From: Histomonas meleagridis 2922-C6/04-290x
Lineage: Eukaryota > Protista > Parabasalia
Reading direction: 5' to 3'
DNA: 64,000 nt
Assembly (NCBI GenBank): GCA_020184695.1
Contig: JAANOX010000039.1
Coordinates: 1 to 64,000 of the forward strand
Positions 180 to 64,000 of this stretch are shown here, one piece after another. Under the pieces are notes generated by a model that was given only the letters and a program-made list of their open reading frames with translations, had not been told where the DNA came from and did no database searches. The position numbers were made by a program, and so were the translations under genes. Within the stretch, counting starts at the first letter, position 1. Each line of letters opens with the position of its first letter.

Positions 180-2184
180 TTAAGAAGGTTTTGTTATATT
201 TGAACTCTTATGAGTATTTATGAATGAGTTTATGATTTTAAAATTTTTTAAATTAATGTTAATACTTTTTTGATCAAGAAGCATTCTAACTATTACTCGA
301 TGATTATTTTGGCATGCATTTATTAGTGCTGTTGTAAATTTCACAAATAAATTCCAAAAACAGATAATAAAACAAAAATATTGGAAAAAAATATCAAAAA
401 AAAATAATTTAATACTTTGAACATTGATATCTGTTCCTTCTTGTTCAATAAGTAATTTCACTATTTCCTTATGCCCATCCCAACTTGCAAGAATAAGTGC
501 TGTTTCAAAAAATTCCAACAAATTTTCAAAAATAACTTCGAACAAAACAAAATTAAATTACCAGAATTTAAATCAATTCCTTTTTGATCAAGAAGTAATT
601 TTACTATATCAAGCTCTTAACCTCCTTGTGATGCATACATAAGTGATGAAAAAAATAATGAATTTAAATATGAAGTTTAAAAGATTCGCATCAAAATAGA
701 GAAAAAATCATAGAAAACAAAGATTAAATATCTTTTGCATTTAAATCAATTCCTTTTTGTTCAAGAAGGTGTTTACAATATTAGTGTACCCCTTATAAAC
801 ATATATATACTTTTATTGAAAGGTTAAATAAATTTTAAAGATTAATAAAAAACATTTAATTGTTGATAATAACAAAAAAATAAAAAATATATCATTTTTA
901 GAATTAATATCAATTTTTCTTTGTTGAAGAAGTAATTGAGTTATTTCATATCCATATTGGGATGCAAGAATAGAGGCAGAGTATTAAATAATATAAAAAA
1001 AAATCCAAAAATAATATAGGAGGAAAAATTAAAAATATTATTATAAATTTTAAAATTAAAAATAAATATCTTTTCATTGATATCAATTCCTCCTTGTTTA
1101 AGTATATACATAACAAGATCAACATTTCCATATTTAATTGCATCAACTAAAAATCCACATGGAGCATAATTCTACAAAATATTTGTTTAATAACAAATTT
1201 CCATTTTTTATAGTTTCTTTTATTATTTCATCATTAATTTCTAAACCTTTTTCTTCTAAAAATGATAAAATTTCATAATTATTATATTTAATACATTTAA
1301 TTCCTAATTTAGTTAAATCTTTGTTTTTAATAATTTTCTTATCATAAAAATCATGAAAATATCATTTTATGAAATTTAATTGCTCTTTCATATACATCTT
1401 CAAATAATGAATTATTTTGTTCCATAAATGAATAATTTCTAAATTTTCCTCCTGCAATTGCATATTTTAATGTTTGATCTTAATCCTTTTTGGTCAATCT
1501 TTCTTAAAACAGACAAATAAATACCTAATAATGTTAATCGAACATTCTTTATTCAATAGTGTGATATCTTTCATAAAGTGATGGTTTAATAAATTGATAT
1601 TAAATTTCTTTTTAGAAGTTATTTTTTGAAATTTTTCTAAATCATCTTTTCGAATAATTTTGACAATTTTTAATAAATTAAATCCTTCTTGAACTAATTT
1701 TTTATGAAGACTCCAATCATTTTTCGATAAGTTATCAAAATTTTCAAAAAATCTTGATCAAATCGAATAGTTGGAATGGAGAGGGTTGCTTTAGTCTTTC
1801 AATTTCAAATTTTGTTTTGTAATGTGCAAAATAAAAAGTTGATTTATTTCTTATCAAATAAGGATTAATTAAACTTTGTTCAATTAGTTTTTCAAGAAGA
1901 TAATTTGATTCCTCTAAATTAGATTGCAAAGTTGTGAATATATCAATTATTTTATAAATATTTTTTTCTTTGTTAGCTTGAATTTTTTTTAATTATTTAA
2001 AGTATAAAAAGTGGTGTTTTATGCCTGTACAAAAAGATGCAAAAATCATCTGACTTATTATCAGAAAATATGAATATTCTATATTTGAATCAAATAAACT
2101 AATTGTTTCAAAAACTGATGAATTAATGTTTTGTTCACTCAAAGAAAAAACAATTTGTTCAATTTTTTGCAAAACATTCATCAA
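180..2184 (-). pseudogene. DUF3447-type ankyrin-repeat gene, fragmented (several frameshifts/stops), with spacer-interrupted C-terminal ANK repeats
   Basis: Fragments read across frames: LQKIEQIVFSLSEQNI, ESNYLLEKLIEQ, LSKNDWSLHKKLVQEG, KYAIAGG, then ANK units GIDINEK / GIDLNAKDI* / ETALILASWDGHKEIVKLLIEQEGTDINVQ. Same architecture as the loci at 20.8, 29.7 and 55.5 kb. Confidence 0.75.
333..729 (-). other. ANK-interrupting AT-rich spacers (D-to-T intervals 650-729, 80 nt; 504-555, 52 nt; 333-413, 81 nt)
   Basis: Counted between the INAKD-equivalent codon and the T of TAL on the minus strand. Confidence 0.7.
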
Positions 2185-3053: not shown

Positions 3054-4527
3054 ATGGTTCTTCAAGATCTCGGCGAGAAAACTTTTGAAGGGTTCAACAA
3101 ATTGTAATACAAGAAAGTTGATGACACCTTTTTCCAAGCAGTTTATTCGAAATTGTTGCTGCTCTTAAAGGAAGCTGATGTTAATCAAAATGACCTAATA
3201 GTAAAATTTATGAAAGACATTACCAGCAAAGTCAAAATCAATGAACTACCGCCAGGCGTTTCTCCCCGTAACATAATTGAGCGTGAAGTATTAAATGCAC
3301 TTGTAACCATAGTTGATCCTAAAACTGAAACCTTTCCAACTGTAACCAAAGGTCGCACCAATGTATACATGATGGTTGGTCTTCAAGGTGATGGTAAGAC
3401 TACGACATGACACCAAACTCCCGGAAACTTCCTAAACGTCGAGGATGGAGAGAGTCGGTGTCATTGGAGCCGATACCTTCCGAGCTGGCGCACGTGAGCA
3501 GCTTATGCAGGGTGCGTTTACAAGCCAATATTCCATATTATCTTGATTTGAATAATAATAGTCAGTGAAATTTCCTTAGCAGGCTTAGCCAAGTTCAAAA
3601 GGAAATTTGATCTTATTTATAGTTGATACCAGTGGTCGTCACATGCAAGTCCCAACTTTTTGCCGAGAAATACAGCAACTCGAGATGCCATCAACTGACG
3701 AAGTTATCTTGTTTGGATGGCACCATTGGCTCATCAATGCGAATACAGCTCGTGCGTTCTCCAAAGCAGTTAGTGTTGGATCAATAATTGTGACCAAATT
3801 AGACTCAGATGCTAAAGGAGGCGGTGCGTTATCCGCAGTTGCAGCCACAGGTTCACCCATTTCATTTTATGGCACAGGGGAAGGCATTGATTCATTAGAA
3901 GTCTTTGATGCGAAAAGTTTCATCTCTCGAATGTTAGGCTTTGGCGATGTTATGGCATTTGCGCGGAAGATGGAAGAGATTGACATGGACAAACAAAAGG
4001 AAATTGCGCAACGAATCCTCGTGTACTTTACATTCAAAGGAAATGTATCAACAATATCAAACTGTGTTAGAAATGGGCGACTTATCGGCACAGTAGATAC
4101 TATGGGCATTTAGCATTATATGCCACGGGTGATCTCCTCGTGAGATATGTCGGACAACGTGAAGCGGATGTTGTACGTAATGGACTCAATGACGGACGAA
4201 AAGTGGAGAACCCGATTCTCCTTCGAGAAGAGAACCGAAGAAAGAATCGCACGAGGATGCGGAATGCCATTGGTCTTCGTGCAATGCAGCCAATCGAGAG
4301 CAAAAGCGTATTGCAAAGATGTTCTCAAAGATGAGCAAGCCAATGCTAGAGCAGCTGATACAAATGGACCAAAACCCCAACTCGCTAAACGAGATCAATC
4401 AAACAAACTAGGAAGCATGTCAAGGGCAATGGACCCGAAGATGCTGCAGCAGTTGAGCGGAGTGACTGGACTGTCGAACTTGATGAAGAAGAGTATGGCA
4501 GCATCGAAGATGAACACTGGGAAATAA
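3054..4527 (+). pseudogene. SRP54: Signal recognition particle 54 kDa subunit, with multiple frameshifts/stops (pseudogene or low-quality consensus)
   Basis: MVLQDLGEK start, [77 protein letters not shown], and Met-rich M-domain tail ending at TAA 4525-4527. Motifs are distributed over different frames. Confidence 0.9.
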
Positions 4528-9656: not shown

Positions 9657-11083
9657 GTAAATGATTTAATGTGTTTTTGATCGCAGAAAATGAGATATGA
9701 GAAAGTCGAAGAAGTAAAACATTTATGAGCGAATTATTTATGTCGCATCGCTAATGTTTTCGGATACGTTCCAATTATTATGATGATAAAGAAGCATTAA
9801 ACATCGCATTTTAGAAATATCGAAGAAGGTTTCAGCTATTCAAGCAGTAATAACATCAGTAACAGGATAATGCTTTTCTGAACACAATCAATTACATCGA
9901 AGTTATTAATTAAAGCTGTTTCACTATAGATCATCTTGTCAGCGATTTGATTAATATCATCAAATGATTAAATGCGTGAAATAGTAACCGGATTAATTAA
10001 AATGTATTATAATTCTTTGACGCGTGAACAAGGATTAGAAATAATTAATTACATCCAAAACTTGAATCGTCTTGGCTACTCATCCGGATGACTTGCAATT
10101 GGCACCTGTCTAATATGCGCCACCGCTAAACACTGCAAAAACTTGCCCTAGTGATCAAATCGCACTCAGACGTTATCCCAAATTAACATTATAGTTCATG
10201 CCATTATGCTTGTCTGAAAAAAATGTCAATTCCCATTATCGCATAATTAATTTGAAATTCCATGTGTTTGAATTAAAATATGAGTTCCCATTTAACAAAA
10301 GAAAAAATGTAAAATCATCAAGGAAATCATGCTGGCATATATTTGGTCATAAAAGATAGCTAAAATGCACAAATGAAGCAATATTGGTAGTTTTTTTGTG
10401 ATGTTTATCATCACTGAAGTCATCTTTGACTTCTTCGACATTTCCATTACCTATTGTATCAAATAGTCAACTTCTTGATTTGGTTGTCGTCCATGAACAA
10501 ATTATACGATGCCTAAATCAATTAGATCTGATATAAGATTCCATTTTATAAATAATGGCATAATTGATTAATTAAAAGGAAATGTGAATATGTTACATGA
10601 AGGTTAAAGAGCGGTATTGAATTAAATTTCAAAGTATTTAGATAGTGGTTAGATTTACATGTTTATTTTGATATTATATATTAAATTATCTGAAAATGTG
10701 GAATTGTCTGTGAAATGCATTGTGTAAATCACTTAAATAATACGTTAATCTCTCAAAAATACACCGGAAATTTATGGGTAATTATGCGTTTTTTCTCAAA
10801 ATATTTTGACATGTTGTCAATGACCATTTTCGTTCGTTTGGGATAATTTTTACAAACAATAACCGTAAGTTTACACAATGTTTATTAATGAATGTTTCCA
10901 ATTATATGTACATCATATAATCATCATATTGGAAAATATTAGTAAACATATTCCATTTTTAATAAATTATAAATTAATCTATCTTTTATTTTGATTATAT
11001 TAAGATATTATTATTTTACCAAAAAAATAAAAACATCACCAATACAACTTTTTGATAATAGGTCCCACAAATTTGAGAAGTTT

Positions 11084-11863
11084 ATGAAACTCTTGACCAC
11101 ACCCTTTCAGGAGGATCTTGTAATGTCAGTTGTTACACCTCACCCAAGTATATACCGTGTTTCTTGCTATGGTTGTGGTCAGATGTATGTAAGGCGTGCA
11201 GAAACTGATAAATGCCCATTTTGTGGACGAACTACCATCAAATACTATGAATGTAAGTGTGCAAATTGCGGCCACATCGTAACTGTCAATTCATTTGATG
11301 ATGCCTGCAAATATTGTGCAGCAAGAGGCAAATGGACACAAGGTACTTACAATGGTAAAGTATTCAAATACGCTGTTATTCCAAAACAAGTCATTCCTGA
11401 TGAAACTACGGTTATTACAACATATATAACAGAAGAGCAACCACCACCTCCACCAGTTAAAACAACCAAAACAACATATATCACAACAAAACCAGCAACA
11501 TCTACATCAACCACAAAGACAACATATGTTACCACAAAGCCAGCCACAACATCTACAACAAAGACAACATATGTAACGACAAAACCATCAACATCTACAT
11601 CAACTACAACAAGAACTTATGTTACTTCAAATCCATCAACATCTACAACAACAACGACGTATGTTACTCCAATGCCAACAAAGTCATCGACAACTAAGAC
11701 AACATATGTTACCACAACTCCAGGAACAACTACCACAACTACAAAAACCACTACAACTACTACTACTACTACAAACGGTGGAAAGCCTTCAGGTCAAAAG
11801 GTAGAATTCAAGTTTGATATGGGAGAAAGAGAAGGTCCTTCTCCAGACTGCTTCATTGCTTAA
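11084..11863 (+). CDS. Cys-rich (four CxxC) / Thr-rich repeat protein with C-terminal CaaX-like motif (CFIA)
   Basis: CYGC, CPFC, CANC, CKYC; ~13-aa TTKTTYVTTKP repeats; ends PSPDCFIA*. Start is ATG 11084 or 11123 (the ORF-track TTG start is unlikely). Confidence 0.8.
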   Translation: MKLLTTPFQEDLVMSVVTPHPSIYRVSCYGCGQMYVRRAETDKCPFCGRTTIKYYECKCANCGHIVTVNSFDDACKYCAARGKWTQGTYNGKVFKYAVIPKQVIPDETTVITTYITEEQPPPPPVKTTKTTYITTKPATSTSTTKTTYVTTKPATTSTTKTTYVTTKPSTSTSTTTRTYVTSNPSTSTTTTTYVTPMPTKSSTTKTTYVTTTPGTTTTTTKTTTTTTTTTNGGKPSGQKVEFKFDMGEREGPSPDCFIA

Positions 11864-13710: not shown

Positions 13711-14532
13711 ATGAATGATTTAATTGCTAAAGCATGGTCAATGGCTCAATTTGATGATATTGACGGGCTTAGAGAATTAGTTCCTAGTCAAGTGAGCCCA
13801 AATGCATCAACTCATTCTGAAGAAAATCATGTACATTCTTTATTAATGTGTGCTTCTGCACATGGTTCTATTGAATGTGCAAAATATTTACTCGAAAATG
13901 GCGCTAATGTTGAACAAAAAAATTTTATGGGCTTTACAGCATTACATTGGACAGCTTTTACAGGTCGTCTTGAGTGTGTTGATCTTTTATTAGATAGTGG
14001 AGCTGACATCAATGCAAAAACAGAAGATGGAAAAACAATTGTACATATTGCTGCATCTCGTGGACACATTAATTATCTCAAATATGTTCTTGATATTGGT
14101 GCTGATTTAGATGCTGTCAATAGCCTTGGATGGACCGCCATATTTCTTGCTGTTGTAGCCAATCAAAAGGCTACTGCCAAATATCTTCTAGAAAGAGGAA
14201 TCGAATATGATTACCTGGATGCCAATCTTCAAAAGCTCACTGACATTGCTGCCAAATACAATAGGACATGGTTCAATAGTCTTTTAGAAGAAAACATTAA
14301 AACTGAACAAAAATCTGAATCTGATAGCAAATCTGAATCACAACCTCCACCAGAAAAATCAATCCCATCTTCATCACCAAAACAAAGTAAGGTTAAAAAG
14401 ATAATTAAAGCTGCGAAAGATGTTAACGAAATCATACAAAACGATTTTTTTGATTCTGATGAATCGACATCAGATGAAGAAACAAAGGCAAAAAAGACAA
14501 CTAAGAAGTCTCCAAAAAAATACAAACAATAA
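13711..14532 (+). CDS. Ankyrin-repeat protein (canonical, uninterrupted repeats) with acidic/basic tail
   Basis: GANVEQKNFMGFTALHWTA, GADINAKTEDGKTIVHIAA, GADLDAVNSLGWTAIFLAV; 4 residues between the K(N/D) position and TAL. Confidence 0.93.
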   Translation: MNDLIAKAWSMAQFDDIDGLRELVPSQVSPNASTHSEENHVHSLLMCASAHGSIECAKYLLENGANVEQKNFMGFTALHWTAFTGRLECVDLLLDSGADINAKTEDGKTIVHIAASRGHINYLKYVLDIGADLDAVNSLGWTAIFLAVVANQKATAKYLLERGIEYDYLDANLQKLTDIAAKYNRTWFNSLLEENIKTEQKSESDSKSESQPPPEKSIPSSSPKQSKVKKIIKAAKDVNEIIQNDFFDSDESTSDEETKAKKTTKKSPKKYKQ

Positions 14533-20755: not shown

Positions 20756-22679
20756 ATGAGCAATCAAAGGAAAGAAACAAAAACGAAACAAATAATTCAC
20801 AACAAATTGGAATTCCTTGTATTTGTTAAACAAATAATTTTCAATTTGAATGAAGAAAATATTATTCAATCCTTTAATTCGTTAATCACTCAATTTGATG
20901 GAAACCATTTTTACTCATTCAACCTTTATGTTAGTCAAATGATATATATACTTTTTAGTATGCGAATAAATCATTATGAAATTTATTTTGATTTTATAAA
21001 AAAAATTGAACAATATGAAGAGAATAACAACAAACCCAAAATTTTAGGAGCGTTTACAAGTTTCCTTTTGCTTGAGCACAAATTAGATCAAGAAACATAT
21101 ATATTCTTGAGTATTTGATTGAAAATAAATACATTGAACCAAAAATTGCCAAAGATATAGATATTCCATATTTTATACACTATATGTCTGAAGAAGAAAT
21201 TAATGAATTAGAAAAAGATAATTATTTTGGGCAAATCCAAGAAAATTATGATAAACTATCAAAGAATGATTGGGAACTTCATAAACGTTTCATAAAAGAA
21301 GGAAATAATAAATTTGGAATCGCAAAAATAATACGGAATGATGATGTTGAAAAACTTCAAAAAATTTCATCACAAACGAATTTTGATTTTAATCAATATA
21401 TTGAGCAATCAATGTATGAAAGATGTTCATTTATTAATCAATGGAATATTTCATTAATAGATTATGCAGCATTTTTTGGTTCAATTAAATGTTTCAAATA
21501 TTTACTTATGAATGGTGCAGATGTTTATTATACAGGTAAATATGCAATTGCAAGTGGAAATGCAGAAATCATTCATTTATGTGAACAAAATCATGCATCA
21601 TTTAAAGGTGCATATGAAACAGCAATACAATTTCATCAAAAAGATATCTTCAAATATTTATATGAATACAAAATAAGGGTAATTGATAATTTAGAAGAAT
21701 TAGGAAAGTTTTGTATTTTATATCATAACTATGAAATCTTTTTATTCTTACTTGAAAATGGATTGAAAATTGATGATGATATTATAAATGAATCAGCAAA
21801 GATCTGTAACTTGTTTTTATTCGAATATTTTCTTCTAAATTATAAAATCCGAAAAAATATTTTATCATATTCTTCAAATTCTGGAAATATTGAACTTGTC
21901 AAATATATTTTAGAGCAAAAAGGAATTGATATTAATGCTAAAAATATTTATTTGTTTTACTTGAAATTTATTTTAATAATTTTATATTTCAAAATAATAT
22001 TTGGAAATTATTTAAATTATTTGAAACAGCACTTATATATGCATCTGATGAAGGTTATACAGAAATAGTTCAATTACTTCTTGAACAAGAAGGAATTGAT
22101 ATTAATGCTAAATATATTTATTTGTTTTATTTAATGTTTATTTTAATAATTTCTTATTTCAAAATAATATTTGGAAATTATTTAAATTATTTAAAACAGC
22201 ACTTATGAAAGCATCTGAAAATGGTCATACAGAAATAGTTAAATTGCTTCTTGAACAAGAAGTAATTGATATTAATGCTAAAGATATTTATTTGTTTTAT
22301 TTATAATTTATTTAAATAATTTTATATTTCAAAATAATATTTGGAAATTATTTAAATTATTATATACAGCACTTATGTTAGCAACTAAAAATGGTTACAC
22401 AGAAATAGTTAAATTACTTCTTGATCAAAAAGGAATTGATATTAATGCTAAAAATATACATTTGTTTTATTTGAAATTTATTTCAATAATTTTATATTTC
22501 AAAATAATATTTGGAAATTATTTAAATTATTTGAAACAGCACTTATATATGCATCTGATGAAGGTTATACAGAAATAGTTCAATTACTTCTTGAACAAGA
22601 AGGAATTGATATTAATGCTAAATATATTTATTTGTTTTATTTAATGTTTATTTTAATAATTTTATATTTCAAAATAATA
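20756..22679 (+). CDS. DUF3447-type ankyrin gene; one 1-nt frameshift at ~21105; five spacer-interrupted ANK repeats; 3' end cut by mariner
   Basis: NLNEENI..LSKNDWELHKRFIKEG..IIRNDDVEKLQ..SLIDYAAFFGSIKCFKYLLMNGA..AIQFHQKDIFKYLYE, then 170-nt periodic ANK exon/spacer units from 21946. Confidence 0.85.
21946..22679 (+). other. Array of ANK-interrupting spacers: D-to-T intervals 21946-22025, 22116-22195, 22286-22365, 22456-22535 (all 80 nt) and a fifth from 22626 cut by mariner
   Basis: Direct count; exact 170-nt period; spacer ~9% GC. Confidence 0.9.
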
Positions 22680-22755
22680 TAGGATGTCCGGTAGAAGTAT
22701 TAGCATCTCAAAATAGAAAGAAAATAAATAAAAACAAAAAATATTATTTTTTTCT

Positions 22756-23763
22756 TTAGTGAATGTATTCACCTTTGGTATCAATAACTCTTTGTAATCT
22801 CTCTTCCCAGTTTAGAAAAGCTCGGTTCAATTCATCTTTTGAAATGTCATTCAAAATTCGATGAACCTGATGTCTTAACTGTTCAGGGGTTTCAAATAAA
22901 TAACCCTTGAGCTTTTCTTTGACATTACCCAAAAGATAAAAATCTGATGGTGCTACGTCAGGTGAATATGGGGGATGTGGAGCTCTTTTCATCTGGTTCG
23001 AGTCAATAAAATTTGTGGTGATGCGAGCAGTATGCGGTTTTGCATTGTCAACGTGCAAAATTAAATTTTTATCAGAACCATCATTGAATCTTTGAACAAG
23101 TTTAGATAAAATATTATTCACGTAGTAGTGTACATTAAACTTTTGATTTTTAGGAAGACAGTCAACGATGGCAAAACCATTTGGATTGAAATATATTGAC
23201 AACATGGATTTTTGAGAGGAAATTTTTTTTGATACAATTTCTTATGAATTATTACCTATTTGTACCCATCTTTCCTGATAATCATAGTTTAAATAGCACC
23301 ATTATTCATCTCCTGTAACAAAATGCCTCCAGGAATCTTTTTTTGCAGTTCTAATGACACTTAATAGTTTGATACATAATCGAACCCGCACTTTTTTTTG
23401 CTCTGGTTTAAGAGAATTGGGTATCCAATGAAGGTGTCTGCAAACGAACCCAATTTTGATTATATAATCGTAAACAGTTGACCTTGGGATATTTGTTTTA
23501 TGGGCTATTTGCCTAACTGAAAAAAAAGGGAATTCATCAAGCCCCTTAAAAATTTTTTCATCAGTGTTTGATGGTTCAGTGAAATTATTTGATTCTTTAG
23601 ACTCATTACTATTTGTTCCGATTGTTCCTAATCTAATTGCTCTAGTAATACTTTGTTATGATTTACAGGAAGCACCTAAAGTCTCTTTCATATCATTATA
23701 TATTTTAACAGCTGTCCATCCTTTTAGGCTGAGATATCTTGCGACACTATTTTGGTCAATCAT
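22756..23763 (-). pseudogene. Mariner transposase, 335 codons, three in-frame TAA stops, no frameshift
   Basis: ATG 23763; HLHWIPNSL (WVPHEL-like), VTGDE*W, HVDNAKPH-x-HPPYSPDVAPSDF (34 residues between the last two Asp); stops at 23656-58, 23302-04, 23242-44. Confidence 0.92.
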
Positions 23764-24631: not shown

Positions 24632-25885
24632 TAGTGGGAGACACGTCGGTTGAACTCTTATTTTTTTAAACAGCTATTTTTCAAAATGTTTACATATATT
24701 TTCACAACTTTACATTTTTTTCGAAAGTTCAAAAGATATGTCTCATTCAAATCAAAATGGTTTTATTGAAAATCATCGAAAAAGTTATTCTGGATCTCCA
24801 TAAAGTCTAAAAATCGTTCGATCTGTGGTGGCATTTACAATTCTCAGCCTTTTTGGAATACTCATGACAAGTCCGTTTATCGTCTGTCATTGGAGGGCTT
24901 CCCAAACATCCTTTACAATTTTTATCAAATCATCAATGGTTTTGGGCTGAAGTGCTTCTACTCTGGTTTCCATAATTGCCGAGACTACTTCAATAATGTT
25001 CAAGTCTGAGCTATATGGAGGCCAATCTATCAAAATATTTATTTCCAATTCATTTAAAACGCGCATTGTTTCTTTGGAGATATGAGGACGAGCATGGTCC
25101 TGCATGAGTGTCCATTCGCTGATCCCGTACTTTTTATCTGCTTCTTCAATTAAATTAGAACCGAAAATTATTTGTTCAATATAATTCTCTGAGTTCAATG
25201 TTCCTTCAATGATTACCAAGTCCGTTTTAGATTGATATCCAATGCCACCCCATATCATAATTTTTGGTGAATGCGATTTTTGATTCGATAAAACTTCATT
25301 GGTTATCTGAGTTTTGACAACCCAAACCCAGCGTTTATTTTGTCTTAAAATAAACCACGATTCATCAGTAAACACAGTTTTTAAAAAATTTGTACTATTT
25401 TCAATATGAAATTTTGTAAATTCATATCTTTTCTGAGCTGCAGCTGGTGTGATATATACAGATCGAATTGGTAATCTGTATATTAAACCATTTCTCCTTC
25501 TATGTCTATTCACAGTTCTACCTGAAATTTTCAATCCAAAAAATTCATATAATTCATGAGCTAATTTTTCACCAGATATATGAGGATCTTCAATTGTTCT
25601 GCAGTGAATGTACACCGAATGAACATCTTTGATTTTTTTCTCATAAATTCTTTGCGTTGGCATTAGATTTGATAATGAATTATATATTGTATTTTTGGAA
25701 ATATCTAAAACTTTTTGACTCAGGTTTATATTCCCACCCAGCGTAATGTAAACGTGTCTGATGTATGCGTATCTTTGCGCAATGAGAATAGATTTTAAAA
25801 AACTTTTCATTTGACAAATGCCGTTTATTAATTTGTTTCATACAAACAGTGATTTTGTGAGGTTCAACAGCAATGTCTTCCACTA
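24632..25885 (-). mobile_element. Tc1/IS630-like (DD35E) DNA transposon, 1254 bp, imperfect 24-bp TIRs, TA duplication
   Basis: TAGTGGGAGACACGTCGGTTGAAC (24632-24655) vs reverse complement of 25862-25885 TAGTGGAAGACATTGCTGTTGAAC (19/24). TA at 24630-31 and 25886-87. Confidence 0.9.
24785..25810 (-). pseudogene. Tc1-like transposase with one in-frame TGA near the C-terminus
   Basis: VFTDESWF, IMIWGGI, LMQDHARPH, WPPYSSDLNIIE (35 residues D-to-E). After TGA 24887-89 the frame continues QTINGLVMSIPKRLRIV to TAA 24785-87. Confidence 0.9.
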
Positions 25886-29588: not shown

Positions 29589-29678
29589 GTATTATAAAGT
29601 TTTTGTGGTTCAGATGAACTTTTTTGACAATAGTCTGTTCAAATAACTTTTTGATATGAAAGTGTAACTAACAAACAG
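29589..29678 (+). other. Candidate conventional parabasalid spliceosomal intron (90 nt)
   Basis: GTATT..ACTAACAAACAG (11/12 to ACTAACACACAG); removal joins ATG 29584 in frame to ORF 29683 (MLQMNEV). Confidence 0.3.
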
Positions 29679-29682
29679 ACAA

Positions 29683-31981
29683 ATGAATGAAGTCAACTTC
29701 CTGGGTAACATTCAAAAAACAATATGGGAATTAAATGAAGAAAATATTGATGAAAGCATTGAAACAATAAAAACTTTATATGATTCTAATTTTCCAATTT
29801 CTTTCAATCAAGTTCTAATGCATTTTATTTATTCAAGCATAGAATCACAAAAAAATGACTTAAACATTTATTTTGAATTTATAAAAAGACTTCAAACACC
29901 AAATGATCAATTTATAGATATTTTTTCACACTTTCTTCTACATATTTATACACAAGAATCTAATTATCTTCTAGAAAAGTTAATTGAAAATGATTTTATT
30001 AAACCTAATATTATTCGAAACAGAAAATCATTATATTTTGCACATTATAAATCCATTAACGAAATCAATAAACTAATTGAAAATTTAAGTACTCCATTCA
30101 ACACAGAGTTTCATGAAGGCATTAAAGAACTATCAAATAATGATTGGGAACTTCATAAGATACATGTTAACGAGGGACATAATCCAAATGAACTTGCAAT
30201 AATAATTAGAAATGACGAAGTTGAAAAACTTCAAAAATTGTCTTCACAAACAAATTTTGATTTTGATCAAAAAATAGAACCATCACTTTATGAAAGATGT
30301 GACTTTATAAATAAAGAAAATGTATCATTAATTGATTATGCAGCATTTTTTTCTGCTGTTAAATGTTTTAAATATTTACTTATGAATGGTGCTGATATTA
30401 TTCATACATTTAAATATGCAATTGCAGGTGGAAATATCGAAATCATTCATTTATGTGAACAAAATCATTCGTTTTATGAAAGATCAATGAAAGCAGCAAT
30501 TAAATTCCATCAAAATGATATCTTTCATTATATTCATGAAAATAATTTCGAAGTTAATAATTTGGAAGATTTAATAATGGAAAGTATTGTATCTGATAAC
30601 TATGAAATTTTATCGTTTTTGGAAGGAAAAGGAAGAAAAGTCAATAATTCTTTGATCAATTATTTAACAGAAAATGGTAATATCTTTCTTTTAAAACATT
30701 TTCTTGAAGGAAATGATTTACCAAAAGACATTTTAATTACAGCAGTAAAATCAAGAAACATTGAAATTGTTAAATATATTCTTGATCAAAGAGGAATTTA
30801 TATGAATGTTATTGATATTTTTTTAGTGTAATTAAAATTTATCTCGTGATAATGATATCTCATTTTTGATTATAAAATTTTATACATATATTTAATACCT
30901 TATTTCTAATTGCTTGTCAAGAAGGATGTTTTGAAATTGTTAAATTCCTTATTAGAAAAAAATGTGGTAGTATAAATGATGTTAATGTTTTTTTAATGAA
31001 TTTGATATTAAATATATAATTTTTCTTGTTTAAAATGCATATTTGGAATTCGTTTGAAATGTTTTATAATGGGTTTTTATTAGCATCACAAAATGGTCAT
31101 GAAAAAATTGTTGAATTCCTTCTTCAAAAAGGTAAATTTGATATTAACAATTATAAAACCATTTATTTATATTTCTTAAAGTCAATTTTCCTTTAACAAA
31201 GTTTTACATTACATTTTTGGTGTTATTTTTTCTTGTTTTGGACTGCATTAATGGAAGCATCATATTATGGTCATGTTAAAGTCGTCAAACTGTTACTCAA
31301 ACAAAAAAAATTGATGTTAATATTATTGAATTTTGTTTCTTAGATTTAATATTAATTTTAATCATATAAAATTTCAAAATATTATTTGGATTACAACATT
31401 ATACAGCATTAATGCTTGCATCTCAAAATGGCCATACTGATATTGTTAAATTACTTCTTAAGAAAAAAGGAATTAATATCAATACTAAAGATATTTTATT
31501 GTTATATTTAGAATTAATTTTAATAATTTCAATATATCATCATATTATATTCGGAATTTATTTAAATTATTTGAAACATCACTAATGGATGCATCTCGTT
31601 TTGGTTACACAGAAATAGTTAAATTGTTTCTTGCACAAAAAGGAATTGATATCAATGCTAAAGATATTTAATCATTTTATTTAAATTTAATTTTTAAAAT
31701 TTAGTATTTAAATAAAATATTTGGAAATTATTTTAACCACATAGGACAGCACTTATGTTTGCATCTGAAAATGGTCATATTAAAATCGTTAAATCACTTC
31801 TTGAACAAAAAGGAATTGATATCAATATTAAAGATATTTAAATATTTTGTTTAATATTTCTTTCATTCATTTAATATATCAAAATATTATGTGGAGTTGA
31901 TTCAAACCATTTCATACAGCACTTATATATGCATCTAGAAATTCACATGGGGAAATAATAGATTTACTTCAAAAATATTAA
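29683..31981 (+). CDS. DUF3447-type ankyrin gene with seven spacer-interrupted ANK repeats
   Basis: Uninterrupted 378-codon N-terminal part, then ANK exons (TLFLIACQEG, TALMEASYYGH, TALMLASQNGH, TSLMDASRFGY, TALMFASENGH, TALIYASRNSH..LLQKY* at 31981) separated by spacers. Confidence 0.85.
30817..31915 (+). other. Array of seven ANK-interrupting spacers (D-to-T intervals 80, 81, 81, 72, 83, 80, 80 nt)
   Basis: Intervals 30817-30896, 30987-31067, 31161-31241, 31331-31402, 31493-31575, 31666-31745, 31836-31915; sequences strongly diverged from each other. Confidence 0.88.
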
Positions 31982-32153
31982 TATCTAATACAGTAAAGAA
32001 GATCCATTTATAGAAAATTTTTTTTATATACACTTAATTTTTAAATGCAAAATACGAAAATATAAGTAACTAAAACATGAAACAGATGTTCATAATCATT
32101 TGGTATTTTCATTATGTATTGCATATTTACGACCGTTTAATTTCAGCAAATTT

Positions 32154-55467: not shown

Positions 55468-57379
55468 ATGGAATATTCCACAAATAGAAATCTTAACAGT
55501 AAATTTGATATATATTTTGAAGAACTAAAGTTCTCTTGAATATATAATATTTCATTTAACTGATGAAAACTTGAATTTATCAATCGAACAAACAATGAAA
55601 CTATTTGATTCAAATTCACCATATTCATATAACTTAATCATAAGTATTTTAATTTATTTTGCATTTTCTTCATCTCAAAAAATTACATGTGATTTGTATA
55701 TAAATTATTTACAAGCAATTCAAGCAAAAGAAGAAGAATTAAATAAAGATGTACCAAAAATAATTGATATTTTTTAAATTTTATATCCAAATATGATTCA
55801 AAAGAAACTTATTTTTTAATTGAGAATATGATTAGTAAAAATTTAATTGATGCAAACATAACAAAAAAATTTCAATATGGTTATTTTATGCATTATAACA
55901 AAAAAGAAGAAAATGACTTCATTGTTAATAATACCCGTTTTTTGAGTAGTTCAATCAGGCAAAGAATGAAATTAGCAGAGGAAATCATAAAAAATTATGA
56001 AGAACTTTCAAAGAATGATTGGGAACTCCACAAAAAATTAATTAAAGAAGGAGTTAATCCAAATGAAATTGCAAAAATCATTCGAAATGATGAAATCGAT
56101 AAACTTCAAGAAATATCATCACAAACAAATTTTGATTTTAATCAAAAAATAGAACCATCGCTTTATGAAAGATGTTCATTTAATAATATTAAAATTCAAC
56201 CATCACTATATGCAAATCATTCATTTATTAATGTTACATTAATTGATTATGCAGCATTTTTTTCTTCAGTAAAATGTTTTAAATATTTACTTATGAATGG
56301 AGCAAATGTAGAAAACACAGGTAAATACGCTGTTGCAGGTGGAAATGAAGAAATCATTCATTTATGTGAGCAAAATCATTCATCATTTGAAGATGCATAT
56401 GAAACAGCAATTGAATTTCATCGAAATGATATCTTTAAATATATTTATGAAAACAAATTAGAAAAAATGAAAGAAAATATAGATATTTTAGGTTATTTTT
56501 GTGTTAAAAGTGGAAATTATAAAATTCTTTCATTTTTGGAAAAAGAAATAAATATTAGTAAACATATAAATGAATCAGCAGAAATAGGAAACTTATATTT
56601 GGTTAAACATTTTCTTCTAAATAACCAAATTCCTAATAATATTTTAGTTTTCTCTGTATTATCAGGAAATTTTGAACTTGTTAAATATATTCTCGAGCAA
56701 AAAGGAATCGATATAAATGAAAATAATTTTAATTTGTTTTGTTTGGATTTTCTTTATATAATTGGAGATATTAAAATGATATTTAAAAATTATTTCAAAT
56801 ATTTAAAACAGCACTTTTGATCGCATCAGAAAAAGGTCATACAGAAATAGTTAAATTACTTCTTGAACAAAAAGGAATTGATATTAATGCTAAAAATATT
56901 TAATTGTTTTATTTTGGATTTATTTTAATAATTTTATATTTCAAAATAATATTTGGAAATTATTTAAATTATTTAATACAGCACTTATTTTAGCATCAGA
57001 AAAAGGTCATACAGAAATAGTTAAATTACTACTTGATCTAAAAATATTCAATATTAATGATCAAAATATTAATTTGTTTTATTTAAAACATGTTTTATTA
57101 ATTTTATATTTCAAAATAATATTTGGAAATTATTTAAATTATTTAATACAGCACTTATGAAAGCATCAGAAAAAGTCATACAGAAACAGTTAAATTACTT
57201 CTTGAACAAAAAGGAATTGATATTAATGCTAAAGATATGTTTTCGTTAAACTTTTTTATGTTTCAAAATTTTTTTTTTGGTAATTATTTAAATCATATCA
57301 TTCAGCACTTATGTTTGCATCTTCGAAAAATCAAACAGAAATAGTAAAATTATTACAATATTTTGAGAATAAAAAATGA
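55468..57379 (+). CDS. DUF3447-type ankyrin gene with four spacer-interrupted ANK repeats; 1-nt frameshifts at ~55530, ~55772 (T-run) and ~57175
   Basis: LSKNDWELHKKLIKEGVNPNEIAKIIRNDEIDKLQ, TLIDYAAFFSSVKCFKYLLMNGA; exons TALLIASEKGH, TALILASEKGH, TALMKASEK, SALMFASSKNQ..KK* (TGA 57377-79). Confidence 0.85.
56728..57301 (+). other. Array of four ANK-interrupting spacers (D-to-T intervals 80, 80, 80, 65 nt)
   Basis: 56728-56807, 56898-56977, 57068-57147, 57237-57301; 170-nt period. Confidence 0.88.
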
Positions 57380-60754: not shown

Positions 60755-62710
60755 TTAAATTCTGGTGAAAGTTTCTTCTTTGAAATCATTTGCAAATGGA
60801 TCTTCGTCAATATTCGTGATCGATATTCCATTATTAAATGAAGTTATTTCATTAGAATTTTTGTTTTCATAACTAATTACTGATTCTTCTGATAAAACTT
60901 TGTTTCGATTTCGAATATAAATGAATACAAAAATAAATATCGTAATAATAACAACAAGTCCAATGATGATGCCAATGATAATATAAATATTATTATTGTT
61001 GTTATTATTGTTAATATTCTCATCTTGATAATATATTGAAAAGAAATTAGAATAAAAACTATAATAAGAAGAATATATAACAACTGTATATTCATAAAAT
61101 ATAAGTTGTGAAACAATTATTGTACTCATTGAACCTGTTATCCATAATGTGTTTGTATTCGTTAGAAATGATAATTTAATAGATAACGTTTGCGTATATG
61201 AAAATATTAAAGTTAAAGTATAAGAATGAGAAATAGAATAATAAACAGTTAATGTGTTTTGTATAAATGTATTTGATTTAGTGAAAGTATTTGATTTAGT
61301 AAATGTATTTGACTGTGAAAATGTGTTTGATTTAGTAAATGTATTTGATTGACTAAATGTATTTGATTTAGTAAATGTATTTGACTGTGAAAATGTGTTT
61401 GATTTAGTAAATGTATTTGATTGACTAAATGTATTTGATTTAGTAAATGTATTTGACTGTGAAAATGTGTTTGATTTAGTAAATGTATTTGATTGACTAA
61501 ATGTATTTGATTTAGTGAATGTATTTGACTGTGAAAATGTGTTTGATTTAGTAAATGTATTTGATTGACTAAATGTATTTGACTGTGAAAATGTATTTGA
61601 TTTAGTAAATGTATTTGATTGACTAAATGTATTCGATTTTGGAAATGTAAGTGATGATGTAAATGGTTTAGATGGTGTTAACTCTAATGTTGGCATTGGT
61701 GAGCATCCAGCAATAATTGATCCTTTCTTAACTTGCAAATCGCAAAATGTATCATCAACATATGTCGATAATGTCATAATTGTTGTAAGTGTAGTTTCAT
61801 CAAATACTCTATCACCAATGCTAGTTGGATTTGTTTTTCCATAATAATAAAAACATTTGAGATTTGTACAGTGTGTGAACACAGTATCGCTAATCGAATC
61901 GATTCGACCTCTAATAAAAATAGTTTCTAATTTTTCACAATATATAAAAGCAGAGATCTCAATGGTATTAACTGAAGATGGAACTATGATTTCCTTTAGT
62001 GATTTGCACTGAGAAAATATACAAGCGCCAAGATTTCGTAGGTTTTCTCCAAGGTAAACATCTACTAAATTTGGACAGCTATTTAAAATATTTACGCCTA
62101 TTGTTCGAACATTTTTACCCATTTTAAATGAAATCAAATTTGGACATGAAATAAACGCATTATTGCCAATGGTTTCAACTGAGTCACCTATGACAACAGT
62201 TTCTAATAAAGGCCATTCCATAAATGAAGTAGATGGAATAGAAGTAACTGAATAAACAAGAAGATGAATCGTTGAATCACAATAATCTTGTGTGAAATCA
62301 GTCGTTTTTTGGATCGTGAGAGTATTATTATAGGAAGAAAACACTTGACATGTGTGAGAAAAAAGTAACAAAATAAATGGGAATTTTTTTATTTTAATAA
62401 TTTCTTTAATTGCTGCAAAACATGTGAACCGCTTTAATAAAATAAATTTCTTGAACAAAAAAAAGATTTCAAAAACGAAGCATGTGATACTGATTGCAAA
62501 TTGAATCAATAAAACAATCTCGATAATATAATTGGAATCTTTTTTCATATATAAATATTTGTTTTCGAATAAAGTAAGAAATGATTGAGTTTGATTTTCA
62601 ATTTGAACATTGGAATGAGTTACATTCATAGGCAAAGATACAGAAAAATTGATCTTTCTGAGATAAATACATGAAGGTATTATTAAAAATATGGAAAATG
62701 ATTGCAACAT
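60755..62710 (-). CDS. BspA-like (TpLRR) type-I surface protein with Ser/Thr stalk, TM and DEDPF cytosolic tail
   Basis: LETVVIGDSVETIGNNAFISCPNL-type 23-aa repeats; (SNTFSQ/SNTFTK)x21; TM IYIIIGIIIGLVVIITIFIFVFIYI; IDEDPFANDF. The N-terminal start is uncertain. Confidence 0.88.
   Translation of the reverse strand: MLQSFSIFLIIPSCIYLRKINFSVSLPMNVTHSNVQIENQTQSFLTLFENKYLYMKKDSNYIIEIVLLIQFAISITCFVFEIFFLFKKFILLKRFTCFAAIKEIIKIKKFPFILLLFSHTCQVFSSYNNTLTIQKTTDFTQDYCDSTIHLLVYSVTSIPSTSFMEWPLLETVVIGDSVETIGNNAFISCPNLISFKMGKNVRTIGVNILNSCPNLVDVYLGENLRNLGACIFSQCKSLKEIIVPSSVNTIEISAFIYCEKLETIFIRGRIDSISDTVFTHCTNLKCFYYYGKTNPTSIGDRVFDETTLTTIMTLSTYVDDTFCDLQVKKGSIIAGCSPMPTLELTPSKPFTSSLTFPKSNTFSQSNTFTKSNTFSQSNTFSQSNTFTKSNTFSQSNTFTKSNTFSQSNTFTKSNTFSQSNTFTKSNTFSQSNTFTKSNTFSQSNTFTKSNTFSQSNTFTKSNTFSQSNTFTKSNTFTKSNTFIQNTLTVYYSISHSYTLTLIFSYTQTLSIKLSFLTNTNTLWITGSMSTIIVSQLIFYEYTVVIYSSYYSFYSNFFSIYYQDENINNNNNNNNIYIIIGIIIGLVVIITIFIFVFIYIRNRNKVLSEESVISYENKNSNEITSFNNGISITNIDEDPFANDFKEETFTRI
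61259..61636 (-). repeat. Coding minisatellite: 21 x 18-nt units with 36-nt and 72-nt higher-order periodicity
   Basis: Units encode SNTF(SQ/TK); synonymous variants GACTGTGAAAATGTG recur every 72 nt. Confidence 0.95.
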
Positions 62711-63203
62711 GTTGCCAAAAAGGAAGTTCTGTTATGAAACTCAGTAAACTATTTAAAAACATTTTTCAGTTGTTTTTTGAATGCGGTTAATGTTGCCCAT
62801 AATTGAGAGACCAACCGTTTCCCCTCAAATAAAGCAAAAAGAGTCAAAATGCAGGTTTCATAATTGGAATCAAGGTTCATAAGTAATTGTAGTAAATAGA
62901 TACTCTACTAAATTGAGAATAAGGAATTTTTCAGCATCTTAGGAAACAAATTTGATTTCAAGTTTGAACATTATGTGGCATTTTCACAGCAGTAAAGATA
63001 TTGTTTTAGGAACTCTGATCGATTTGTGATAAATGTATGAGGATATTATCAAAATAATCGAAAATGATTGTGAACACAACAAGAATAAAACAGATATTTT
63101 TATTTATAGACAATTTATATAAAACCTTTAATGGGAAGAAATTAAACATGCTCACTTTTTAATTTTTTAACATTTTCTAATCAAACAAAACGCATTATAA
63201 TGC

Positions 63204-64000
63204 TTAACAATGTATACATTCTTGATGAGCTTGGAATCATTCAAATAAACGCCAAATATTATTTTGAAACTTGACCAAAAAATTAGAAAAAACATCAAAT
63301 TTAATAAACAAACATCTCTCATATTAATAGTAATTCCTTCTTGATCAAGAAGTAATCGCACAATTTCAACTCGTCCATTATTAGATGAAACCATTAGTGC
63401 TGACCAAAATAAAATGAATAAATTCCAAATATAATTTTGAAATTGTAAAAATTTAAGTTAAACATTATTATAACTATAAAAACATCTTTTGCATTTATAT
63501 CAATTCCTTCTTGTTCAAGAAGTAATTTAACAACTTCAGGTTGATCATTTTCAGATGCACATAAAAGAGCTGTCCGAAATCATTTAAATAATTTCCAAAA
63601 ATTTTCATAAAATTTTAAATTGTTGAATTAAATTTTAATAAATTAAAATGTACATCAACAGTATTTATATTAATTCCTTTTTGTTCTAATAATAATTTTA
63701 CTATTTCTATATGTCCTTTATAAGATGCATATAAAAGTGCTGACCAATAAAATATGAACATATTCCAAATAAAATTTATAAACCCAATATTTAAAAATTT
63801 AATATTGAAAATATATATGAAATATCTGTTTCATTTAGTTCAATTAATTTTTGGTTAACAAGTAATTTAACTATTTCATAATTACCGGATTCAGTTGCAC
63901 ACATTAAAGCTGTTTTATATCACGAAAACAAATTCCAATTCTTACAAGAAAACATCAAGATTTTGAATTAAATATTATTTTTCGCATTTATATCAATTCC
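63204..64000 (-). CDS. 3' part of another spacer-interrupted ANK gene (5' end beyond the window)
   Basis: Exons TALMCATESGNYEIVKLL, SALLYASYKGHIEIVKLLLEQKG, TALLCASENDQPEVVKLLLEQEG, SALMVSSNNGRVEIVRLLLDQEG; D-to-T intervals 63914-63976 (63), 63744-63823, 63574-63653, 63404-63483 (80 each). Confidence 0.82.

Follow-up and report, generated by a model that had tools for sequence, protein, structure and literature searches.

Ankyrin loop codons parted by putative 17-nt mini-introns in a parabasalid DUF3447-ankyrin gene family

Ankyrin (ANK) coding segments of five DUF3447+ankyrin loci recur at a period of 170 nt in the window, i.e. the whole 64-kb stretch of DNA analysed here, and the spacers between these segments shift the reading frame. 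How, then, are the ankyrin repeats of such genes expressed? The period, first described in an earlier note on this DNA, was recovered by TRF (4.5 copies with 88% match at 21916-22680, further arrays at 31344-31936 and 56680-57238) and by an nhmmer profile of the repeat unit (about 25 units at the five loci). Measured from the Asp/Asn codon to the Thr codon, 13 spacers of the window are exactly 80 nt long, the same count as in that note; the remaining measured cases span 63-83 nt (63, 64, 72, 81, 81, 83). As had been stated, the spacers are extremely AT-rich (8.4% GC outside the codons proposed below to be retained) and frame-shifting (80 = 3n+2), and the ANK gene at 13711 is uninterrupted according to Pfam.

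The window is AT-rich (22-37% GC), with few introns and long unbroken ORFs, among them HSP70, a BspA-type LRR protein, RabGAP and Tc1/mariner transposases. Pfam matches DUF3447 and Ank in the ORFs upstream of the spacers. Among named organisms, Histomonas meleagridis has the nearest relatives of the DUF3447-ankyrin ORFs (36-52% identity), followed by Tritrichomonas foetus (28-39%), which points to a parabasalid near Histomonas, perhaps Dientamoeba-like, as the source. The 64-kb window contains neither an ACTAAC-type motif, the absence of which had been noted correctly, nor an intron of the form GTAYGT...ACTAAC...AG; ACTAACAYAYAG does not occur in the window either, and the spacers qualify as trichomonad introns of neither type A nor type B.

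A register of 17 + 3 nucleotides

Internally the spacer has a 20-nt register, which the earlier note had overlooked. Statistics of this register were taken from 15 canonical spacers (60 units) of four window loci and one metagenome scaffold. Position 1 of the unit is a purine in 95% (A in 78%, G in 17% of the 60 window and metagenome units), positions 2-4 are T in 82-88% (position 2 in 82%), position 14 is A in 80% and a purine in 85%, and positions 15-17 are T in 85-93%, with T as the last base in 56 of 60 units. The unit consensus ATTTATTTAAATTATTT accordingly has A/G at position 1, T at positions 2-4, A at position 14 and T at positions 15-17, and an A-rich centre lies at positions 9-11 and 14. 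The units begin with A/G-TTT and finish with TTT, have neither a 3' AG nor ACTAAC, and look alike at their 5' and 3' ends (ATTT...ATTT). U12-type AT-AC boxes (ATATCC at the 5' end, the branch motif TCCTTAAC, 3' AC) are absent from the consensus.

Positions 18-20 resemble a codon, with GC contents of 42, 42 and 13% versus 8.4% in the 17-mers (32% GC for the retained codons overall), and none of the 60 triplets is a stop codon. Nowhere in the unit is variability higher than at triplet slots 1, 2 and 4 (entropy 1.2-1.5 bits), and slot 3 encodes Gly in 13 of the 15 spacers, by GGA as well as GGG. When joined, the triplets read D-x-x-G-x-T-A-L, the hairpin loop of an ANK repeat with its conserved Gly and variable tips (e.g. 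EYGE, NLGK, KSGR, NNGH, KKGR, NTGW). Identity between loci amounts to 25% for the triplet before Thr, 66-68% for the 17-mers and 77% for the exons.

Each 80-nt interval therefore probably consists of four times a 17-nt mini-intron plus one codon; the identity of the retained triplets is predicted from the exact fit of a simulated product (see below) together with the sequence statistics. On this basis we consider it likely that the codons of the ANK loop are parted by up to four 17-nt units that are removed from the transcript. The loop codons (D, x, x, G, x) of each repeat would be split by up to four phase-0 introns, and three loop codons per repeat would thus stand alone as 3-nt exons. The units would be removed one by one, apparently from 5' to 3', and their removal would restore the 34-residue ANK repeat with the loop D-x-x-G-x-T-A-L; Pfam matches Ank in the ORFs, and the loop pattern D-x-x-G-x-T-x-L is predicted once the units are taken out. 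There are up to four units per repeat and about 27 per gene, 17 nt long and occasionally 18-19; spacers J1 and J2 of locus 3 each require one unit of 18 nt, and their middle codon can slide by 1 nt. A loose grammar parser fitted 7% of shuffled spacers, and 13 real spacers failed owing to strict rules or coordinate slips. Because shuffled spacers parse as well, it is the fixed register and the fit to RNA, not parsing, that support this anatomy.

The resulting features are as follows (all mini-introns and retained codons are predicted).

230-1110 (-): locus 1, a badly decayed copy built like the others, its exons and spacers carrying frameshifts and deletions
21856-21945 (+): locus 2, end of the long first exon (last 30 codons, first ANK segment), ending with Asn codon 21943-21945; from translation and Pfam Ank/DUF3447 on ORF 21115-22068; frameshift near 21110
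21946-22022 (+): locus 2, spacer 1, from the 20-nt register and by analogy with RNA-supported locus 3; mini-introns 21946-62, 21966-82, 21986-22002, 22006-22; codons GAA 21963-65, TAT 21983-85, GGA 22003-05
22023-22115 (+): locus 2, ANK exon (loop codon x + TAL...INAKY)
22116-22192 (+): locus 2, spacer 2; mini-introns 22116-32, 22136-52, 22156-72, 22176-92; codons AAT 22133-35, CTT 22153-55, GGA 22173-75
22193-22285 (+): locus 2, ANK exon
22286-22362 (+): locus 2, spacer 3; mini-introns 22286-302, 22306-22, 22326-42, 22346-62; codons ATA, TAT, GGA
22363-22455 (+): locus 2, ANK exon
22456-22532 (+): locus 2, spacer 4; mini-introns 22456-72, 22476-92, 22496-512, 22516-32; codons GAA, TAT, GGA
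22533-22625 (+): locus 2, ANK exon
22626-22680 (+): locus 2, spacer 5; mini-introns 1 and 2 and codons AAT, TAT intact, mini-intron 3 cut at about 22680 by a mariner-type insertion
29683-30816 (+): locus 3, first exon (DUF3447 + first ANK), ending with GAT 30814-16
30817-30893 (+): locus 3, spacer J0; mini-introns 30817-33, 30837-53, 30857-73, 30877-93; codons AAA, GAT, AAA
30987-31064 (+): locus 3, spacer J1; mini-introns 30987-31003, 31007-24 (18 nt), 31028-44, 31048-64; codons GAT 31004-06, CTT 31025-27, GGA 31045-47; from RNA pieces 30894-30987 and 31065-31161 (8 letters between) and simulation
31161-31238 (+): locus 3, spacer J2; mini-introns 31161-77, 31181-97, 31201-18 (18 nt), 31222-38; codons AAA, AAA, GGT; from RNA pieces 31065-31161 and 31238-31330 (7 letters between) and simulation
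31331-31387 (+): locus 3, spacer J3; mini-introns 31331-47, 31351-67, 31371-87; codons AAT, AAA; fourth cut to 9 nt (31391-99) by an 8-nt deletion; from RNA pieces 31238-31330 and 31388-31493 (6 letters between) and simulation
31493-31572 (+): locus 3, spacer J4; mini-introns 31493-509, 31513-29, 31536-52, 31556-72; codons AGA, CAA TAT, GGA
31666-31742 (+): locus 3, spacer J5; four mini-introns; codons AAA, AGT, GGA
31836-31912 (+): locus 3, spacer J6; four mini-introns; codons AAT, AAT, GGA
31913-31981 (+): locus 3, last exon, ending with TAA
56728-57301 (+): locus 4; three 80-nt spacers (56728, 56898, 57068) with four mini-introns each, ANK exons between; a fourth spacer of 64 nt from 57238 with three mini-introns, the second missing; 1-nt deletion near 57175
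63197-64000 (-): locus 5, running off the window; five spacers with 3-4 mini-introns each, most beginning with GTTT; one unit missing in the first spacer

The same units occur in Histomonas meleagridis and in gut-metagenome relatives, with individual mini-introns present or absent. In one gut-metagenome sequence (L008) unit 1 is precisely missing and the other three are kept. The spacers of an H. meleagridis sequence (L007) measure 44-68 nt and comprise 2-3 units of 17-19 nt at varying codon boundaries of the same loop (e.g. D-N-R-[17]-G-[17]-W-T at 3704-3749); Histomonas units mostly begin with GT, with G at position 1 in 9 of 14. A contig of a more distant parabasalid (L004) has one frame-shifting, U-rich insert of 26 nt that starts with GT directly after the loop Gly. 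Duplication of modules of 20 nt (unit + codon) and of 170 nt apparently spread the units within the one family.

Removal of spacers from RNA

Contigs from three sequencing runs labelled "RNA?" and one labelled "DNA?", all of the same organism, were placed on 29600-32050, which covers locus 3, the only complete gene. The run type "RNA?" is a guess, and the data are assembler contigs of low depth (5-23), not reads. Record 5 of RNA run X1 matches 30894-30987, 31065-31161, 31238-31330 and 31388-31493, and record 8 of RNA run X2 matches 31065-31161, 31238-31330, 31388-31493 and 31530-31657, both with 0 mismatches. Only 8, 7, 6 and 2 letters lie between consecutive pieces, and the gap of 8 recurs in X2 record 7, a close paralog. 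What the RNA contigs give is the number of these letters and the piece boundaries, the letters themselves being predictions. The 3' pieces set in exactly 3-4 nt ahead of the Thr codon, and a spacer loses 68-69 nt net, which brings the reading frame back. The same joins are present in three runs, and in X1 the spliced form has a depth of 23 versus 1.7-5 for the retained form. One further RNA contig match stops at 30817, which fits codon AAA of J0 supplying the following A.

DNA-run contigs X6 records 21-23, on the other hand, are collinear through the spacers (30503-31005, 30977-31332, 31303-31629) and cross the exon borders without branching. In spacer-dominated bins RNA depth is about 0.4-5, whereas DNA depth is uniform there. 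Joined forms are found only in RNA-run contigs, and joined DNA of the kind known from ciliate IES was not seen among the DNA contigs. Since DNA contigs keep the spacers and RNA contigs lack them, the spacers are removed at the RNA level. Part of each spacer is kept, because a simple deletion would leave no unplaced letters. The earlier note had proposed that a surplus of about 68 nt is removed during expression by a route other than GT-AG; the RNA contigs do skip the spacers, by a route that makes no use of GT-AG or ACTAAC signals, but probably as four 17-nt units and not as one spacer.

We simulated an mRNA from which the 17-nt units are removed (18 nt once each in J1 and J2) and in which the triplets are kept, and placed it on the same stretch by BLAST. 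This predicted mRNA returns all five observed pieces and all four gaps (8, 7, 6, 2) exactly. The one-letter overhangs at 30987, 31161 and 31493, which arise because the first letter of the retained triplet equals the first letter of the unit, come out of the simulation as well, and so does the one at 31238. Simulated products of a single intron, of an 8-nt micro-exon and of a TTTGGNNN micro-exon fail to reproduce the RNA pieces and gaps. The predicted letters are GATCTTGGA between 30986 and 31065 (J1), AAAAAAGGT between 31160 and 31239 (J2), AATAAA between 31330 and 31388 (J3) and AGA between 31492 and 31530 (J4). At J3, 8 nt of the fourth unit have been lost, and the RNA retains the remaining 9 nt. 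At J4, where the match of X2 record 8 ends at 31493 and, after 2 letters, resumes at 31530 to continue unspliced, units 1 and 2 are gone, AGA is left (two of its letters being unplaced), and units 3 and 4 are present. Both special cases fit the mini-intron model, which needs no extra assumptions for them.

The units act separately, as seen from the remnant retained at J3 and from intermediates with upstream units removed and downstream units retained. The J4 intermediate, together with X3 record 17, in which J1 is processed and J2 untouched (retained forms being of low depth), suggests removal in 5'-to-3' order. A U2-type 3' AG is not found; the T end of the units is fixed by the boundaries of the RNA pieces at J1 and J2.

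Processed locus 3 is predicted to be 1838 nt long and to encode 613 codons with a terminal stop only, given one N at an A-run near 31303-31310 that is 1 nt short in the locus and in RNA too. Its predicted loops are DLGY, KKGW, NKG+LQHY, RQYGE, KSGR and NNGH; an example of a predicted loop peptide is ...INAKN-EYGE-TALIYASDEGYTEIVQ... All database gene models of the DUF3447-ANK family, including the "caskin" models of Histomonas at NCBI, end in the first unit, and the arrangement has therefore gone unrecognised in annotation. An exhaustive HMMER search returned only DNA-derived ORFs that end in the first mini-intron, the spliced protein did not turn up when exon 1 and one exon ORF (2 matches) were used in a protein word search, and a pattern scan of JGI metagenomes for the spliced form yielded only unrelated bacterial ANK genes. 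Of the five copies in the window, four have frameshifts, truncations or heavier decay, and the fifth runs off the window; from these lesions and an exon dN/dS between loci of about 0.67, much of the family may be decaying here. Locus 3 is transcribed and processed despite this decay.

Candidate machinery and alternative readings

The machinery could be a divergent, intron-defining spliceosome that works at its minimum intron length, and this is the option towards which we lean. To our knowledge, no class of spliceosomal introns ends in U or is associated with successive 3-nt exons. A spliceosome is favoured by G/A at position 1 and U at position 2, as in GU/AU introns, with G dominant in Histomonas; by the A-rich centre, a possible place for a branch point, 6-8 nt before the 3' end; and by the near-constant length, as in other minimal introns. 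Parabasalid spliceosomes handle introns of about 25 nt (PMC12316389). Against it stand the 3' end, which is U and not G/C, the lack of a branch box, and the restriction of the units to one family within the window, where a scan for 17- or 18-nt units joining two long ORFs outside this family found none. An Rfam scan of the window for snRNAs and other RNAs gave no match.

The same anatomy could also arise by non-spliceosomal removal, e.g. by a length-measuring endonuclease/ligase acting on AU-rich 17-mers, which we regard as rather unlikely. The three points just raised against a spliceosome, the nearly fixed length and the similar ends of the units (ATTT...ATTT) speak in favour of such a route. 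However, the start with G/A and then U (mostly G in Histomonas), the A-rich centre and the capacity of parabasalid spliceosomes for introns of about 25 nt (PMC12316389) argue against it, and no stable RNA structure is predicted. Eight spacers folded with their flanks gave seven z-scores between -0.8 and +1.2 and one of -2.1 relative to shuffles; these whole spacers, as distinct from lone 17-mers, hence fold no better than shuffled ones, and end pairing of the euglenid or bulge-helix-bulge kind was not found in them. Equally tentative is the broader option that the 17-mers are non-spliceosomal substrates of length-measuring RNA excision and ligation, or that, whichever machinery is at work, optional skipping of single-codon exons serves to vary the ANK binding loops of one gene in length and sequence.

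Other readings replace the 17 + 3 anatomy itself. Two introns (51-52 nt and 17 nt) around one 8-nt micro-exon ending in TTTGGN would give D-(I/V)-F-G-x-TAL; this would place the Gly rightly, contain no stops in 14 units and, with an aligner that places gaps leftmost, yield the correct gap lengths at J1 and J2. Under ordinary maximal extension, however, other piece ends are predicted, the 6 letters of J3 and the 2 letters of J4 need ad hoc cryptic sites, and the variable GC-rich triplets at 18-20 and 38-40 as well as the purine-TTT at 21 and 41 are left unexplained, which makes this arrangement very improbable. At J1 it predicts G+TATTTGGA, in contrast to GATCTTGGA under the mini-intron model. 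Micro-exon offsets were enumerated against the constraints as (44,25), (17,52), (23,46), (51,18), (52,17), (53,16) and (57,12), and each fails at J3/J4, in the coherence of J1 with J2, or by stops in canonical copies.

Artefacts such as template switching by reverse transcriptase, assembly chimeras or a processed DNA copy may be considered, as similar ATTT motifs flank the units, the contigs combine short length with low depth, and the run type RNA is only guessed. Switching between ATTT repeats would, however, leave one repeat copy, yet the whole 17 nt are gone. The identical joins in three runs, the excess of spliced over retained forms in X1, the codon-precise removal that restores the ANK consensus and the unbranched passage of DNA contigs across exon borders likewise make an artefact a slim prospect at best.

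Hardly any weight can be given to the reading that each repeat holds a single non-canonical intron of about 68 nt and keeps 12 nt beside the Thr codon. It would explain the net loss of 68-69 nt and the restored frame, and the TAL frame is indeed open for some codons upstream in many copies. The earlier note had expected on this basis a junction D-ILF(E/K/N)-TAL, which the RNA contradicts: the 8, 7, 6 and 2 extra letters fit neither flank, the 3' pieces start 3-4 nt before the Thr codon, and the simulated product yields different pieces. The 20-nt register, the GC-rich triplets and the conserved Gly codon would remain unexplained. Among all possible offsets of a single 68-nt intron, no GT-AG or AT-AC pair fits the frame.

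Dead amplification of a 170-bp pseudogene, DNA excision, ribosomal bypass and programmed truncation to a DUF3447-only protein, all raised earlier and seemingly favoured by the decay of four of five window copies and by database gene models (Histomonas included) that stop in the first spacer, can practically be dismissed: spacers are kept in the collinear DNA contigs and absent from RNA, so that bypass and regulated truncation are unnecessary, and exons, units and loop codons differ in conservation as coding predicts. A -1 frameshift or read-through in the TAL frame, which is open through some spacers, is likewise unnecessary given the RNA data.

Known systems and significance

The literature searched holds no description of an intron arrangement such as the one proposed here. 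Trichomonad introns have conserved motifs at the 5' end and at the branch/3' end (GTAYGT ... ACTAACACACAG). They resemble the mini-introns in stemming from parabasalids with intron-poor genomes, in being very short, in their intron definition and in occurring in repeat-domain genes too. Trichomonas vaginalis and T. stableri have short type B spliceosomal introns of about 23-26 nt, with about 63 active introns per genome and no multi-intron transcript in T. vaginalis (PMC12316389, PMC6260720). The units described here, in contrast, measure 17 nt, have the form RTTT...TTT without AG or ACTAAC, and number up to four per repeat.

Ultra-short introns of fixed length are known from heterotrich ciliates (Stentor, 15-16 nt) and from the nucleomorph of Bigelowiella (18-21 nt); they are of GT-AG type and lie between ordinary exons. 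Their near-constant tiny length, shared with our units, suggests a minimum size that a spliceosome can handle; unlike our units, they are neither separated by single codons nor limited to one gene family. Efficient removal without GT-AG is also known from AG-AC/AG-AT introns of Fritillaria borealis, the last base of which can be T, and from the nonconventional introns of euglenids, which rely on pairing of the intron ends. Both, however, differ from the mini-introns in terminal bases and variable length, and the spacers give no structure signal for euglenid end pairing. Micro-exons of animals and plants can be as small as 3 nt and are spliced (PMC7821500). They are isolated, flanked by long introns and in need of dedicated enhancers, whereas here three predicted 3-nt exons follow one another, 17 nt apart, in every repeat. 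Introners and repeat-derived introns likewise come in many near-identical copies with presence or absence between paralogs; our units are far shorter than any introner.

If confirmed, this would be the densest intron arrangement known to us, with four introns within 80 nt and three consecutive 3-nt exons, in every ANK repeat of a large family and in a lineage thought to be almost intron-free. The limits of splicing would be extended in three ways, namely in intron length (17 nt), in the U at the 3' end and in exon size. Standard annotation and spliced aligners based on GT-AG would be blind to the arrangement. It would offer a compact natural system for studying splice-site choice with essentially no exon. 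It would also explain why gene models of the family end after the first ANK repeat, here and in Histomonas meleagridis. The hypervariable single codons fall at ANK positions that usually contact ligands.

Presence and absence of single mini-introns

Some copies of the DUF3447-ankyrin (ANK) family lack individual mini-introns, the 17-nt AT-rich units of which up to four, with single codons between them, make up a spacer. The absence is precise in these copies:

L008 (a gut-metagenome relative), 1915-1985: unit 1 absent
Window 57238-57301: unit 2 absent
Window 63914-63976, (-) strand: unit 2 absent

Apparently, introns have been lost or gained here at individual codon boundaries. As L008 is without unit 1, the rest of its spacer is wholly in frame, and the database ORF P0012 reads through what remains. 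RNA contigs of paralogs from loci outside the window cross the ANK loop with ...GAT ATT TGG CTT GGA TGG ACA... and ...AAT GGT TGG AAT GGA ACA.... Both loop sequences may stem either from removal of mini-introns or from uninterrupted genes.

Open frames and frameshifts in the family

The frame of the Thr-Ala-Leu (TAL) motif, which lies near the start of each ANK exon after the spacer, is open across the entire spacer in 7-8 repeat units (window 21942-22575 and others), with a translation of approximately YLFVLF.IYFNNFIFQNNIWKLFKLF. Such open frames are commoner than the chance expectation of about 8%, and probably arise incidentally, since the T-rich units contain few stop codons in this frame. 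Otherwise intact family members carry single-base frameshifts, which are recent pseudogenisation or homopolymer variation:

31303-31310, locus 3: A-run short, with the same state in the RNA contigs (assembled from runs labelled 'RNA?')
57175, locus 4, repeat unit 3: one G lost
~21110, locus 2: N-terminal frameshift

Transposases and tandem repeats in the window

The ANK array of locus 2 is adjoined and cut at ~22680, after TA, by the first of two transposase features; tandem repeats lie in two other genes.

22680-23205, (-) strand: fragment of a mariner/Tc1-type transposase comprising its C-terminal DDE part, with ORF 22756-23205
24887-25810, (-) strand: separate, apparently intact Tc1-like DDE_3 transposase ORF
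61264-61649, (-) strand: 18-nt tandem repeat, 21 copies, inside ORF 60755-62710
11461-11774: nested tandem repeats of 21, 45, 48 and 93 nt, inside ORF 10991-11863

The 18-nt repeat displays a 72-nt super-period (94% match), and its host is a BspA-type LRR protein gene. The nested repeats hold many ACA/ACC codons, and this richness suggests a Thr-rich, mucin-like repeat protein as the predicted product.

Split ANK repeats in relatives

In Histomonas meleagridis JAANOX010000047.1 (L007, 3600-5100), the gene model annotated as 'caskin' stops inside the first mini-intron; beyond it follow nine more, unannotated ANK exons with 2-3 mini-introns each, up to a stop at ~5090. In L004 (1698-1745), a Logan contig of a more distant parabasalid, a U-rich, frame-shifting 26-nt insert that starts with GT interrupts a DUF3447 protein in its final ANK repeat, directly after the loop Gly codon. 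This may be a homologous mini-intron site in a lineage further removed.
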